Origin: Octopus bimaculoides
Taxonomy: Eukaryota
Length of the DNA: 64,000 nt
Reading direction: 5' to 3'
Assembly (NCBI RefSeq): GCF_001194135.2
Contig: NC_068987.1
Span: 19,591,074 to 19,655,073 of the forward strand
Shown here one piece after another: positions 18,501-24,500 of the stretch. The notes beneath the pieces were generated by a model. It did not search any database. It was not told the origin of the DNA and saw only the letters and a program-made list of their open reading frames with translations. Each line of letters opens with the position of its first letter. Within the stretch, counting starts at the first letter, position 1. Both the position numbers and the translations under genes were made by a program.

Positions 18501-21500
18501 CACAGAAAAATTTTACATGCATTATTCCACCCAAAATTCTGAACAAAACAAAATACCAACAGCTTTATATTGTCCTTATATTTCAGAAACCACTCCTCAA
18601 AAAAAAAAAAAAAAAAAAAAAAAAAAAAAAAAAAAAAAAAAGATTTTCCCAAAAGGAAATTTGCAATGTACTAAATGGCACCTAATTCCAGCTGTTACAA
18701 GATAAAGGTCACGCACAATCAATAACCATATTTTATTGCTGTAATCCATTCATTGAAGATTATTATGATTAGAACAACATATGGAAATAATTCAGTTGTT
18801 GCTTCACAATATTCAAATTGATGTTTAAACATGTTGGACCTGATCGAGCAGATGTATGATCAAACCGCTTTCAATCATGGCAAACTTATTGTAATTCCTT
18901 TTTAGGGCATAATGCATTTAGGACTACATTATCTAATGTAGTCATTTCGTTTTGTTAAGATATTATGTGGTTTGAGTGATTTTGTTGTATGGAGCAGTCA
19001 TGCTAGATTGTGTGGCATTATGATTATGAAACTGACCAAATAACTGATGGTTTATTTCACACACGCCCATACACAACTAACTCAGAGAATGGCGGTCACT
19101 TGTGGTTACAAGCACTGCTGTGTGGTTAAGCAGTTCATTTCACAGCCACATAGTTTTGGGTTCAATCCCATGATGAGGAACTGAGTCTTGGGTCAACCTA
19201 AAAACTTGTAAGTGAAATTCGGCAAACAAGTTCATTGGAAGGATCATGCTTGTTCTTGGATGGTGGATTTAATCTGTTGCTCAGTTGAACGTCACCCATG
19301 GAAGCTGCCATTTATCCCCCAAATAATAATGATGGTAATGGTTTCAAATTTTGGCACAAGGCCAGCAATTTAGGAGAAGGGTGTCAGTAGATTACATTCA
19401 ACCCAGCACTCAACTGATACCTATTTTGTCAACCCTGGAAAGATGAAAGGCAAAGTTGACCTTGGCAAGATTTGAACTCAGAACATAAAGATGGATTAAA
19501 TGCCACTAGGTATTTTGCCCAGCGTGCTAACAATTCTTCTAATTCACTGCTTTAATAATAAAAACAATCCTTTCTGCTATAGGCACAAGGCCTAAAATTT
19601 TGAGTGACGGGGCTAGTCGATTATGTCATCCCAATAATTATATTTTTAAGCCTGGCACTTATCCCATCAGTCATCTAGGCCAACTGCTAAGTTATGAGGA
19701 CAGAAACAACCCAACACCAGTTATCAAGCACTGGTAAGAGACAAACACATTACACACACTGGGCTAACCAGATCCACTCATAAGGTTTTGGTTGGCATGG
19801 GGCTGTAGTTGAAGACACTTGCCTAAGGTGCCACACAGGGTCTGAACCTGGAACCATGTGCTTGCGAAGTCTATTTCTTACTACAAGTATGAATGATGTC
19901 TTTGATGTATTGTTTTTTTTATTTTATTTCTGTCATGTGAAATGTGAAATACAAATCATCAAAACCATGTTAAGTATTTGTGTCAGAGGAAATGTAAACT
20001 AAAACTGAACAAAGATAATTAAGAAGCCCTGAGTCAAATCAACCGTAAAAATCCAGGTTAACAAAGGTTGTGTGAAACTGAGCATGACATGAGGGACAGC
20101 AAAGCTACCTTAGCATTTCATTTTACTAAACTGTGACACTTATGCTCTTCAGTGACGGAAATTTTTTTTAAAAACCACAAAAGAGCCCAAGGAAATTTAT
20201 GGTCGTTTGCATTGATAAAAATCGTTTAATTCCTTTCTCTATCACACTCTCATTCCAGCTCTCTTTCTATCGCCGAGTTATCTCGCTCCTCTCTATCAAA
20301 GGAAGCACAAGCACTTTTACACACACACACACACACATGACGGAACTTCTGCCTGCCAAATTCATTCACAACACTTTGGGGAAAGAGAAAGAACAAACGA
20401 ATGGCAGCAATGCAAGGAAGGGTTTACTTTTGGTTTTTCTTGGGGTGGGGGGACACTACAATCTCTCAAAAGCAGTTCTCAACCATTTTTTGTCTATGGA
20501 CCCCTTTGATTTCTGTTTTACCCAGAAATTGGGACCCTCGTAGCCATTCAATGTCTAAAAAATCCTGTAATATTTTTATGATTAAATATTATTAGGAATC
20601 GTTTAAAATAATTGTTTAAGCATTTTGAGTATTGTAAAAATATAACCAGTTTATTGCAGATCAATTTTATATAGCAAAATCTTATACGCCACCCCACCCC
20701 ACCCCACNNNNNNNNNNNNNNNNNNNNNNNNNNNNNNNNNNNNNNNNNNNNNNNNNNNNNNNNNNNNNNNNNNNNNNNNNNNNNNNNNNNNNNNNNNNNN
20801 NNNNNNNNNNNNNNNNNNNNNNNNNNNNNNNNNNNNNNNNNNNNNNNNNNNNNNNNNNNNNNNNNNNNNNNNNNNNNNNNNNNNNNNNNNNNNNNNNNNN
20901 NNNNNNNNNNNNNNNNNNNNNNNNNNNNNNNNNNNNNNNNNNNNNNNNNATTACTCTTTTACTTGTTTCAGTCATTTGACTGCGGCCATGCTGGAGCACC
21001 GCCTTTTATAGTCGAGCATATCGACCCCAGGACTTATTCTTTGTAAGCCTAGTACTTATTCTATCGGTCTCTTTTGCCGAACTGCTAAGTTACGGGGACG
21101 CAAACACACCAGCATTGGTTGTCAAGCGATGCTGAGGGGACAGACACACAAACATATACACACACACATACATATATATATATACATATATACGACAGGC
21201 TTCTTTCAGTTTCCATCTACCAAATCCACTCACAAGGCTTTGGTTCACCTGAGGCTATAGTAGAAGACACTTGACCAAGGTGCCACGCAGTGGGACTGAA
21301 CACAGGACCATGTCGTTGGTAAGCAAGCTACTTACCACACAGCCACTCCTGCGCCTGAGATGGTGATAAAGGTTTGCAAAATTAGATAAATTTGTCAGTA
21401 TGGCACGAGGGGACAAGATGTGGCACTATCATGCTATTAGCTGTCAGAAGTGAAAGTGCTCACTGCTAGTGAAGTATCTGTCTGTCTGCCTGCATGCCTG

Positions 21501-24500
21501 TTGCTGGCCTGTCGATTCTTTGGCTACTGACAGCTAATACCATGACTGGCCGGAGCGAGCTATATGTCTGTCTGTCTCTCTATCTATCTATCTATCTATT
21601 ACTCGAAAGTTCGCGCGTCCGCGCTAGCTAGTCGTGAGTAGAAAACACAAATTTAATATAAAAACATATTTCCTGAAATTGCAAATTATTTAAAATATAA
21701 AAATATAATTTTCAACAGAGAGAATTTATCAAAATAGAAAATTTATGAAGTTTGAAGTTTAAAAATAATAGGATCGACCACTCACGACTAGCTAGCGCGG
21801 ACGCGCGAACTTTCGAGTAATAGATAGATAGATAGAGAGAGAGACAGACAGACAGACATATAGCTCGCTCCGGCCAGTCATGGTATTAGCTGTCAGTAGC
21901 CAAAGAATCGACAGGCCAGCAACAGGCATGCAGGCAGACAGACAGATACTTCACTAGCAGTGAGCACTTTCACTTCTGACAGCTAATAGCATGATAGTGC
22001 CCAAGATGTCTCCTTGTGCCATACTCAGACAAGACACCCAAAATCCTCAGTGCTACAACATTAAAAAAAACAAACAAGCAAAAAAAAGCAACTTTCCTTT
22101 CACTTTCTAATGAAGGGCTTTGCTTGAAATATCAGTTTTATCAACACCCCCAACCCTCTACCATGGCATAGGAACTTCTCCAGATTTGTCAACAATACCA
22201 AGTGTTTAAAACATATTTTAACATTTATATGACAAGTAAACAAGGAAACTTATCTTACATGTTTGTTAAAATTTTCCAACAGCAAGGGATCATTGAATTC
22301 TTCATCTTCAACATTGGAACTGCAATAAATAAATAAAGTGAGTGAAAATGTAGCAGAATGCTAAACTACATAATTATGGTGGCTTCTTGACAATTTATCT
22401 AACCTCTCCTAAACCATCCACTTTATCATGAAAACATGAATGTAGAACAGTTTTTTTTCTCTTCCACTCTGTGTGTGTGTGAGAGATAGAGTGTATGTGT
22501 GTGCACGTGTAACAAAACCTCTGTAAACTAGAAACCCCTAGGTGAAATAAATCAGAGATGCTTTGCCCCATACAGAAAATTGCAGGAGCTACTCAGAGGT
22601 TTTGCAAGCTGTTCTAAATCTTACCAAAATTAAAATCACAGTGGAAGTTAATCATGAAGTATCAATGTATGTCATAATACACACAACTAAAGCACCAAAT
22701 ACTGAGGAACCATCAACAAATTTAAGTTTAAACCTACAAGAACTAGAAATTCAATGAAGTTTGGTGCTTTGTTGCCTAAACACCTTGAAAATGTGGATAA
22801 ACTCTGACCTCATAAGGTAGAGTTGAGGCAAACAGGAAGTATTTGACTTCTAATTTTACTGGACCCTGATGACTAAAAGGCGAAGTTGATCTGTATGAGA
22901 TTTGAACTCAAGAACCCCCTTAATATTGGCATAACAGTCACTCGTTTAGAGAATTGTTGTTGTTGTTGTTGGCACTCCGTCGCTTACGACGTCGAGGGTT
23001 CCAGTTGATCTGATCAATGGAACAGCCTGCTCGTGAAATTAACGTGCAAGTGGCTGAGCACTCCACAGACACGTGTACCCTTAACGTAGTTCTCGGGGAT
23101 ATTCAGCATGACACAGTGTGACAAGGCTGACCCTTTGAATTACAGGCACAACAGAAACAGGAAGTAAGAGTGAGAGAAATTTGTGGTGAAAGAGTACAGC
23201 AGGGTTCGCCACAATCCCCTTCCGGAGCCTCGTGGAGCATTAGGTGTTTTTGCTCAATAAACACTCACTACGCCTGGTCTAGGAATCGAAACCGCGATCC
23301 TATGATCGCGAGTCCGCTGCCCTAACCACTGGGCCATTGCGCCTCCCATTTAGAGAATAACCAGAAATCAAATGCTCAATCCATCCAATTGCTGCAACCA
23401 CTTTCCAATTGTATTCAAAATCCTTCTAACTAACAAAGGCTAATTACAAAAACAAAAATAACCTCAGATTTGAAAATGCTCAATTAGTTAAAACCAAAAA
23501 TATGAAGATGACAAACATAATATCACAGTAATGAGAAATTTTGGTTTTAACTTACCCATAAACTAATCCTGCAATGGAACATTTTTTAAATTCCATGATA
23601 TTTCTTGTTAAGGTTCCAGTTTTATCGGTGAATATATATTTGACCTGAAATGCATAAAAAAAAAACAAAAAACAAATAAGTACATTCAATACAAACATGT
23701 ATCTATTCTTTTACTAGTTTTAGTCATCAGGCAGCAACCATGTTGAGATATTGCCTGCAAAGGATTTAGTCATCAATCACATCGACCTCAAAACTCGGTA
23801 ATTATTTCATTGATCTCTATTTATTGACTGGCTAAGCTAAATGAAAGGGTATGACTCAGCGCTCCATATAACAAGGCATAGAAAAAATGGCAAGCAATAG
23901 TGTGAACAACCATCACATATATAATGTATATATATATATGTATACATACATGTACATCTATCTATATACATACATAGTTATCAATAGTTTTCCATTACGT
24001 TTGTATGCTGTTGTCCTCTTCCACATTTACTTCTTGCATGTCCATCACCTCAGATGTCCATCATCACTGGTGCAACCAGAGTAGTACTGTGGAATTTTTA
24101 AGTCTTTGGACTTTAAATGTGTTGAAAGTATGCTGATTCTAGTCTTCCTGGCCGATGTGGATTTCCATGTTTGTCCTTTTCAGTTAATTATTTCCTTGCT
24201 GGATTCATATTCCATAAAGCAGCCTAACATTATAGTATATATATATATATATATATATATATAAAACGATTGCGCTGGTTTGGACATATGGTGAGAATGA
24301 ATGAGGATAGCTGCGTGAAAAAGTGCCACTCCCTAACAGTTGAGGGAACCCGTGGAAGAGGTAGGCCCAGGAAGACCTGGGCTGAGGTGGTGAGGCAAGA
24401 CCTTCGAACATTGGGCCTCACCGAGGTGAGGACTACTGACCAAGACCTTTGGAAATGTGCTGTGCGTGAGANNNNNNNNNNNNNNNNNNNNNNNNNNNNN

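Follow-up and report, generated by a model that had tools for sequence, protein, structure and literature searches.

A nested palindrome in an Octopus bimaculoides intron is probably one of several hundred copies of a non-autonomous foldback transposon

Introduction

The 64,000-nucleotide stretch of Octopus bimaculoides DNA analysed in the current study (the window) contains a palindrome whose arms of about 220 bp each carry inverted repeats of their own, close to an exon of a putative lipid flippase gene. This nested arrangement raises the question of whether the structure serves the gene in which it lies or arrived there by transposition. A preliminary description made from the same DNA had favored a regulatory role, as a splicing switch or a special ADAR or siRNA hairpin by the catalytic-site exon, and had also mentioned a young foldback element. 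The results presented here replace the regulatory reading with that of a passenger foldback transposon. The palindrome is very probably one copy of a non-autonomous, non-coding foldback element of class II (cut-and-paste), inserted as a single unit with an 8-bp target-site duplication (TSD) into a pre-existing palindrome, a view supported by the arms, the TSD, the multi-copy spacer and the termini.

Results and Discussion

Architecture of the element

The element spans positions 21422-22001 (580 bp) and comprises two arms of about 220 bp and a middle domain of 140 bp. Its features are as follows:

21422-21639, plus strand: left arm, terminal inverted repeat (TIR) of 218 nt with terminus GGCACTATCATGC (repeat finder, alignment, exact extension)
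21780-22001, minus strand: right arm, TIR of 222 nt (repeat finder, alignment, exact extension)
21429-21545, no strand: intra-arm inverted pair containing TATTAGCTGTCAG twice, likely subterminal repeats (repeat finder)
21566-21597, no strand: tetranucleotide tract (GTCT)3 CTCT (ATCT)4, 8 units (sequence and alignment)
21822-21857, within the right arm: tract of 9 units
21611-21634, with a mirror copy at 21785-21808, no strand: CpG-rich core TCGCGCGTCCGCGCTAGCTAGTCG (sequence and alignment)
21640-21779, no strand: middle domain (spacer), 140 nt, 18.6% GC, multi-copy according to contigs and RNA

The TIRs form the bulk of the element and are identical outside the tract. Perfect outer pairing extends over 156 nt (21422-21577 with 21846-22001), on which the repeat finder, a MAFFT alignment of the arms and exact extension agree, and perfect inner pairing extends over 57 nt (21583-21639 with 21780-21836). 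The tract, the sole difference between the arms, contains one 4-nt indel and one substitution. TATTAGCTGTCAG occurs exactly four times in alternating orientation (21435, 21527, 21884 and 21976; 0.14 occurrences expected), and the intra-arm inverted pairs measure 28 nt with 86% complementarity (21429-21456 with 21518-21545, and 21878-21905 with 21967-21994). The observed/expected ratio of CpG was 0.77-0.79 in the element and in the arm, compared with 0.35 in the window. The preliminary description was accurate on all of these points, namely arms identical except for a tract of 8 or 9 units, an AT-rich spacer of 140 bp, a dense CpG core in a CpG-poor region, an inverted pair within each arm and a motif repeated four times; the exact arm ends and the length of the inverted pairs are refined here.

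The only ORFs in the element are two mirror images of 45 aa each, and no transposase gene is present. A look-up of the exact 45-aa product returned no record. The repeated motif had been proposed to be either a TALE-homeodomain site (TGACAG) or a subterminal repeat of a transposon. The latter fits better, and the TALE site was set aside because the motif lies inside what are likely the subterminal repeats of the transposon.

Target-site duplication and split host palindrome

Directly outside the arms, four further features were identified, none of them with a strand:

21414-21421: TSD copy 1, CAAGATGT (exact extension)
22002-22009: TSD copy 2, CAAGATGT (exact extension)
21397-21413: left half of the palindrome hit by the insertion (AGTATGGCACGAGGGGA), unique-depth host DNA (~1-4x)
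22010-22025: right half of that palindrome (CTCCTTGTGCCATACT), likewise unique-depth host DNA

The exact 8-bp direct repeat abuts both arm ends, and the chance of such an 8-mer at a fixed offset is ~1e-4; the earlier statement that no TSD is visible was therefore wrong. Removal of the element and one TSD copy rebuilds an empty site with a 19-bp stem and a 3-nt loop. Only about four comparable non-simple palindromes occur in the 63-kb window, and the chance that an insertion in the window hits precisely the loop of such a 19-bp-stem palindrome is ~1e-3. The TSD length and any preference for a palindromic target are based on one insertion, in the single fully read copy.

The outer ~30 bp lie outside the element and represent a 41-bp near-palindrome that the insertion broke in two. 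Their imperfect pairing had been seen correctly, but they had been assigned to the element rather than to the host. These halves differ at 2 of 19 positions, compared with 0 of 213 in the arms, indicating that the two symmetries are not products of one event. As the diverged edges are host sequence, they are also uninformative on arm-to-arm conversion, of which they had been taken as a sign. The three levels of nested symmetry are thus distinct in nature: outermost a host palindrome cut in two, then the element's long inverted repeats, and innermost the subterminal repeats inside each arm.

According to the mechanism suggested here, the transposon would have integrated as a single 580-bp unit at the center of the pre-existing 41-bp near-palindrome in the flippase intron, generating the 8-bp TSD. 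The transposase mobilizing it would have been supplied in trans, and the insertion is probably recent. Within a host RNA, the arms of any copy would pair into a duplex of ~250 bp, and family transcripts would undergo A-to-I editing.

Copy number and family

The depth of the terminal 30-nt word was 43,410-85,862, compared with 40-63 for unique sequence. This corresponds to 1,085-1,569 termini per genome equivalent and, from ~1,100-1,600 termini, to roughly 550-800 copies of the element per genome. In raw reads the arms reached ~250-330x per read direction (~550x in all), and the flanks ~1x. There was no further copy within the 64-kb window, and a metagenome scan with the 26-nt terminus gave no match. 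The element is accordingly not unique to the host gene, and of the outcome that the preliminary description had named as speaking against its own reading, the half concerning an ordinary high-copy MITE is what was found.

In contigs and RNA alike, spacer and arms were about equally abundant. An RNA contig of 121 nt extends from 21639 to 21759, and in RNA contigs the family spacer is likewise flanked by arms. In raw DNA the spacer depth was low (~5-20x in dataset X23 and 40-95x in X24, with arms at 250x and 150x). Since the spacer is multi-copy like the arms, the palindromic unit itself multiplies, and the multi-copy termini and spacer together mark the unit as a foldback-type MITE. Family polymorphisms were mirrored across the arms at matching frequencies (21428/21995, 21494/21929 and 21434/21989), and the flank consensus was absent or different in other copies, as seen from the loose ends of contigs. 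One spacer variant, TTT at 21742-21744, is private to this copy, with CAA in all other copies.

It was also found that the mirror copy of the CpG core (21785-21808) is common to a more abundant family adjoining (TTAGGG)n, and that the right arm matches this family for 11 nt past the point at which the left arm stops (21769-21779). Some contigs have the terminal 36 nt in common and then continue into different, asymmetric interiors, which is a hint only of an autonomous relative; neither such a partner nor a transposase was found.

Host gene and splicing

Judging by a PDB match (6k7g_A, E = 1e-12) and a motif scan, the host gene is an ATP8A-like P4-ATPase (lipid flippase) on the minus strand. 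The element is located in an intron of ~5.4 kb, directly downstream of the exon that comes after the DKTGT exon:

22259-22319, minus strand: host exon after the DKTGT exon, donor GT at 22258/22257 (splice-joint reads and mRNA contig)

The arm end at 22001 is 256 nt from the donor of this exon, in agreement with the 230-260 nt given previously. The splice joint from 22319 to 23556 was supported by 23 reads and by a 3,464-nt mRNA contig, in which the DKTGT exon is followed by the 22259-22319 exon and then by the next exon. In three RNA runs the depth of the 22259-22319 exon equaled that of the DKTGT exon, and no non-canonical junctions were detected at this exon in the three runs and one transcript contig. 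Full depth, canonical joints and a single contig through three exons speak against the proposed splicing switch.

RNA folding and editing

The transcript was predicted to fold into one ~250-bp duplex (-496.7 kcal/mol, z = -66), and a single arm alone into a smaller hairpin (-72 kcal/mol), so that both of the pre-mRNA conformations proposed before, a long duplex and smaller hairpins, were predicted. For the intra-arm pair 21429-21545 alone the predicted fold was ~-46 to -52 kcal/mol. On both strands, Rfam gave nothing beyond sub-threshold matches (89 bits compared with a gathering score of 230) to generic plant miRNA models of the long-hairpin type, which were rejected as structure-only matches.

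In RNA of family members, A>G changes were found at 12-20 sites and T>C changes at 16-20, compared with 2 and 5 in DNA at identical thresholds, and the other classes of change were alike. Among 13 RNA-only sites, the preceding base was G at none and U at nine, and seven had the context UAG; one of the 13 could be explained as a restored CpG. The direction of the first mate was inconsistent between sites, and the libraries behave as unstranded. This RNA-only excess of A>G and T>C with UAG-type context in family transcripts is consistent with editing by ADAR. RNA depth was zero over the unique intron flanks of this copy, and no RNA read could therefore be assigned to it; this particular copy would, we infer, be edited as well. 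The earlier suggestion of an ADAR substrate thus holds at the level of the family, whose transcripts carry an ADAR-like signature. This copy is most likely a passive intronic passenger.

Alternative explanations

The window derives from short-read scaffolding and contains N gaps. Since the two arms of an inverted repeat are merged by De Bruijn assemblers, the identity of the arms could partly be a product of the assembly, and inverted repeats that look perfect in short-read assemblies should be confirmed by long reads. It is nevertheless very improbable that an assembler folded back on, or collapsed, a high-copy repeat at a locus that truly has one arm or differing arms. The scaffold with its N gaps and the family of roughly 550-800 copies would favor such an artefact, as would the lack of TTT-bearing spacer reads among ~186 raw reads, of which only ~1-2 were expected, and the lack of Logan contigs over 21398-21418 in X1-X5, a gap that may result from graph clean-up dropping a 65-nt connector between two high-copy repeats. 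An artefact would not, however, yield a direct 8-bp duplication together with a host palindrome whose complementary halves lie to either side, and the difference in tract length shows that the assembled arms were not simply merged. Moreover, both outer junctions were present in independent individuals. The left junction (21421/21422) was crossed by eight raw reads with at least 99% identity, using a stretch with an arm part too short to attract other copies, and 0-mismatch contigs in six datasets of the years 2015-2025 (X1, X2, X4, X5, X6 and X10) extend from 21975 across the right junction into the flank. A unique-depth contig with the private TTT variant was found in X4 and X1, and RNA contigs, too, show the family spacer between arms. 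No empty allele was detected among eight datasets.

Also very improbable is an in-situ inverted duplication, by which a single unit would have been copied in inverted orientation through template switching or hairpin-capped break repair, leaving a locus-specific structure that is not mobile. Such an event could account for arms that are not perfectly co-extensive (the right arm runs 11 nt further, 21769-21779) and for flanks that are inverted copies of each other, but not for an 8-bp repeat that is direct instead of inverted and brackets the entire palindrome. The multi-copy spacer, at about the level of the arms in contigs and RNA, the family variants, whose frequencies match between mirrored sites of the two arms, and the contrast between the outer halves (2/19) and the arms (0/213) argue in the same direction. 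Exaptation of this copy, as a hairpin recruiting ADAR or giving rise to small RNA or as a modulator of the adjacent donor, is likewise very improbable. The 256-nt distance to the donor, the extremely stable predicted duplex, the edited family transcripts and an insertion that appears fixed in eight datasets are compatible with it. Yet the exon is included at the depth of the preceding exon with canonical joints only (three RNA runs and one transcript contig), intron reads at the locus are zero and hence no locus-specific editing was seen, the Rfam matches remain at 89 bits against 230, and the high copy number implies that most copies are passengers.

A second "palindrome", at 59760-59977, was rejected, as the repeat finder had paired an N run. 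Single-copy-depth contigs in X1, X3 and X4, in which the end of the SINE (21356) is joined to the beginning of the left arm (21422), speak against the transposon reading.

Relationship to known systems

The element is of an ordinary kind, a further member of a known foldback class. Foldback elements are mostly assigned to the Mutator superfamily. Tetris of Drosophila virilis (PMC4079207) and the Tm1 MITE-like elements of Meloidogyne (PMC3169594) are foldback elements that combine modular TIRs with a non-coding middle domain and have TSDs of 8-10 bp. The octopus element is like them in architecture: long modular TIRs (outer domain, short tandem repeats, inner domain) make up most of it, and it has a short non-coding middle domain and many copies without a transposase of their own. 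It differs in that its internal repeats are a tetranucleotide tract, compared with units of 14-220 bp in Tetris and Tm1, and in that its arms are identical, whereas those of Tm1 average 93% identity (PMC3169594). Autonomous members of the Mutator superfamily carry a MULE/Phantom-type transposase. The usual Mutator TSD is 9 bp (range 8-10), and the 8 bp found here, in a single copy, are at the edge of the Tetris/Tm1 range.

Galileo, a foldback-like Drosophila element of the P superfamily, has TSDs of 7-8 bp, and its target motif is palindromic and potentially able to fold into a stem-loop (PMC4168063). The octopus element, with termini GGCAC..., is likened to it by structure, in its long TIRs, AT-rich segment and 8-bp TSD centered in a palindromic target (one insertion here), although Galileo targets a 15-bp consensus around GTANTAC, whereas the target here is a 41-bp near-perfect palindrome, seen once, in which CAAGATGT has no GTANTAC match. 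It is conceivable but unlikely that the family recognizes the centers of pre-existing palindromes or cruciforms by DNA structure, beyond the 15-bp motif of Galileo, such that "hierarchical" palindromes would grow by nesting, with arms perhaps kept identical by intra-element conversion.

An 8-bp TSD and a non-autonomous TIR structure are also found in hAT MITEs. The hallmarks of hAT elements are the target nTnnnnAn and the termini YARNG; this superfamily was rejected, since positions 2 and 7 of CAAGATGT are A and G, the terminus is GGCAC, and the arms are far longer than typical hAT TIRs. Helitrons and Helentrons have neither TSDs nor TIRs and insert between A/T or T/T. Derivation from them was ruled out by the 8-bp TSD and the 220-bp TIRs, and the GC hairpin and CTAG in the core are a resemblance only.

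Octopus is unusually rich in loci forming near-perfect dsRNA, and hyper-editing of palindromic repeats is a known phenomenon (PMC5625713). The element shares with Alu pairs of primates, a palindromic Harbinger repeat of Xenopus and other octopus repeats the property of an intronic repeat that by itself forms long near-perfect dsRNA. Transcripts of the family further resemble ADAR hyper-editing substrates in their RNA-only A>G clusters, which have a UAG-type context; a difference is that editing was observed here at the family level, with no consequence seen for the host transcript. Octopus transcriptomes have been reported to bear an unusually high load of dsRNA and hyper-editing, and the element is a concrete case of the palindromic repeats that give rise to it.

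Structure of the element

The preliminary description had reported a palindrome at 21392-22032, and the sequence there agreed with it. The parts of the 580-bp foldback copy are listed below.

Parts of the foldback element (window coordinates)
21422-21639, left arm
21566-21597, tetranucleotide tract of the left arm, 8 units
21640-21779, spacer, 140 nt, GC 18.6%
21780-22001, right arm
21822-21857, tetranucleotide tract of the right arm, 9 units

In direct alignment, the left arm and the reverse complement of the right arm differed solely in the tetranucleotide tract, an identity which was read from a short-read assembly, and such assemblers tend to merge the arms of inverted repeats. 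Exact extension gave 156 perfectly paired bases at the outer ends (21422-21577/21846-22001) and 57 at the inner ends (21583-21639/21780-21836). A repeat finder returned a 178-nt inverted pair (98%), an inner 87-nt pair and, inside each arm, a 28-nt inverted pair (86%). As described, TATTAGCTGTCAG occurred exactly four times, at 21435, 21527, 21884 and 21976 (expected 0.14). The CpG observed/expected ratio was 0.77–0.79 in the element compared with 0.35 in the window. For both length and perfection, this inverted repeat by far exceeded every other in the window; a 109-nt "palindrome" returned by the repeat finder at 59797-59936 was an artefact of an N run.

Insertion site

No target-site duplication (TSD) had been recognized previously, but CAAGATGT abuts both arm ends in direct orientation (21414-21421 and 22002-22009); in this window, an exact 8-mer match would arise at these fixed offsets with a probability of about 1e-4. 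With the element and a single 8-mer taken out, the sequence reads AGTATGGCACGAGGGGACA-AGA-TGTCTCCTTGTGCCATACT, and the predicted empty site before insertion is AGTATGGCACGAGGGGACAAGATGTCTCCTTGTGCCATACT. Since this rebuilt site is itself a stem-loop (19-bp stem with two transition mismatches, 3-nt loop), the imperfectly pairing outer 30 bp, formerly taken as the edge of the element, are host DNA, namely a small palindrome split at its centre by the insertion. Only about 4 comparable non-simple palindromes were found in the 63-kb pre-insertion window, and a central hit by chance therefore has a probability of about 1e-3. The one mildly unusual feature is that the element integrated exactly in the middle of a host palindrome, with a single insertion to judge by. 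Two further short non-simple near-palindromes, at 52561-52603 and 38428-38476 (19-bp stems, at most 2 mismatches), are of a kind resembling the split target site.

Copy number and mobile unit

Genomic reads from two 2026 runs covered the unique flanks about 0–5x and the arms about 250–330x per read direction, or roughly 550x in total. The terminal 30 nt had a summed word depth of 43,410–85,862 in contigs from four other individuals, compared with 40–63 for the adjoining unique DNA. Termini numbered 1,085–1,569, corresponding to roughly 550–800 two-ended elements, a count that takes in relatives with the same terminus. The spacer was as abundant as the arms in both contigs and RNA, and one RNA contig spanned exactly 21639-21759 with arms on either side. 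Family polymorphisms were found at matching frequencies on mirror positions of the arms (21428/21995, 21494/21929 and 21434/21989). Taken together, the spacer abundance, spacer contigs, mirrored variants and copy counts show that the repeated, mobile unit is arm-spacer-arm. No further copy was found within the window.

Coverage of the AT-rich spacer (21652-21759) was very uneven between the two raw DNA runs, both from one study: about 5–20x in X23 compared with 40–95x in X24, and arm depth ran the opposite way. Library bias or unequal copy number could account for this.

Evidence for the locus

At 21742-21744 the window copy reads TTT, compared with CAA in every read from elsewhere, and the TTT version of the spacer was found in a unique-depth contig of other individuals. 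The right junction was covered from 21975 by contigs with 0 mismatches in the independent datasets X1, X2, X4, X5, X6 and X10, while in X7 and X11 a flank contig begins at the right boundary. No contig linked the right flank to the left flank, as an empty allele would. As no Logan contig crosses the left junction, raw reads were aligned to 21357-21436, of which only 15 nt are arm. Eleven reads matched, 11/11 at at least 99% identity, and 8 of them were continuous over 21421/21422. The gap in the contigs likely arose in graph clean-up, through loss of the 65-nt unique stretch that connects a SINE with the element.

This tRNA-derived SINE copy (21188-21356, minus orientation) has a read depth in the thousands and ends at 21356, 65 nt from the element. 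In single-copy-depth contigs of X1, X3 and X4, its end at 21356 is joined to the arm start at 21422 with the 65 nt skipped; these could represent another copy of the element beside a SINE, or an allele of the window locus. N runs at about 20700-20990, 24400-24800 and 59797-59936 indicate a short-read scaffold assembly.

Host gene and splicing

The minus strand codes for an ATP8A-like P4-ATPase. A peptide over two exons matched human ATP8A1 (6k7g_A, E = 1e-12), and further exons were located by their motifs.

Exons of the host gene (window coordinates)
39395, minus, motif exon, DGETNLK
25742, minus, motif exon, motif match
end at 23556, minus, DKTGT exon (catalytic Asp)
22259-22319, minus, exon after the DKTGT exon, donor GT at 22258/22257
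16808, minus, motif exon, CHT
9990, 5300, 2854 and 524, minus, further motif exons, motif match

The joint from 23556 to 22319 was supported by 23 RNA reads from three runs and by a 3,464-nt transcript contig, which beyond 22258 reaches the CHT exon near 16.86 kb. The element thus lies 256 nt downstream of the donor, inside an intron of about 5.4 kb that also holds an N gap. A splicing switch had been proposed, but no sign of a splicing effect was seen: RNA depth over exon 22259-22319 (about 18) equalled that of the DKTGT exon (about 17), and no alternative joint at this exon was listed in the three RNA runs or the transcript contig.

The intron upstream of exon 22259-22319 contains a high-copy repeat (22938-23346), with an RNA-seq depth of 400–900 compared with about 17 for the exons; its reads begin and end abruptly at 23210 and 23307.

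RNA folding and editing

Folding of the minus-strand transcript (21392-22032) predicted a single unbroken duplex (-496.7 kcal/mol, z = -66); the first-transcribed arm was predicted to fold by itself at -72 kcal/mol. Thus both of the folds suggested earlier, one long duplex or small hairpins in the arms, should be possible, with the long duplex predicted to dominate thermodynamically.

In octopus, an exceptionally large share of loci forms near-perfect dsRNA, and hyper-editing is known to target palindromic repeats (PMC5625713), so that editing is expected at the level of the family. Changes in RNA and DNA were counted at identical thresholds.

Sequence changes in RNA and DNA reads
RNA, three runs: A>G sites, 12–20; T>C sites, 16–20; other change classes similar to DNA
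DNA, two runs: A>G sites, 2; T>C sites, 5; other change classes similar to RNA

Among 13 RNA-only sites examined, G preceded the edited base in 0/13 and U in 9/13, UAG was present at 7/13, and a restored CpG was possible at only 1/13. The RNA-only changes are an ADAR signature in family transcripts. The unique parts of the intron on either side (21364-21399 and 22012-22227) had zero RNA depth, and the reads therefore stem from other copies. The proposal that the palindrome is an ADAR substrate thus finds support in family RNA, no read of which could be assigned to the window copy, and a regulatory role at this locus gains no support.

Classification and related repeats

The element has the anatomy of a foldback-type MITE: its terminal inverted repeats (TIRs) are long and modular, its middle domain is non-coding, it is flanked by a TSD and it is present in many copies. 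The structure is real and of an ordinary kind, a new representative of a known class. The hallmarks of hAT elements, an nTnnnnAn target and YARNG termini, were not matched, and a Helitron-type element is excluded because a TSD and TIRs are present.

Structural counterparts of the element, whose TSD is 8 bp, are Tetris (TSDs of 8–10 bp; PMC4079207) and Tm1 (8–10 bp, mostly 9; PMC3169594), both placed in the Mutator superfamily. Galileo, a member of the P superfamily, combines TSDs of 7–8 bp with a palindromic motif at its target (PMC4168063).

In some DNA and RNA contigs, the match is confined to the terminal 36 nt (21422-21457 and 21966-22001), after which they read AGAAAAATCTGAACAAGGAATGTT; at the mirror point a different interior follows. 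They represent a related element, possibly the parent family, whose TIRs are short and whose interior is asymmetric, and they may point to a transposase-bearing relative of the foldback element.

The CpG core and 11 nt beyond the right arm (21769-21808) also occur in a much more abundant repeat. In about 1,000–1,580 raw reads per run, (TTAGGG)n stands directly before 21769 and CTGCGCGTTCGGGTCCGCGCTGCTTTAGTA follows 21808. The repeat resembles a GC-rich family, dispersed or tandem, adjoining telomere-type repeats, and the foldback element seems to have taken over part of it, or the other way round.

At 62470-62700 there is a second, compact element (about 230 bp) that is likewise palindromic, with nearly perfect arms of about 105 nt around a 14-nt centre; it starts with TAAGCCATTTAAAATAAC, ends with GTTATTTTAAATGGCTTA and looks like another MITE, so that self-pairing elements are common in the host gene.
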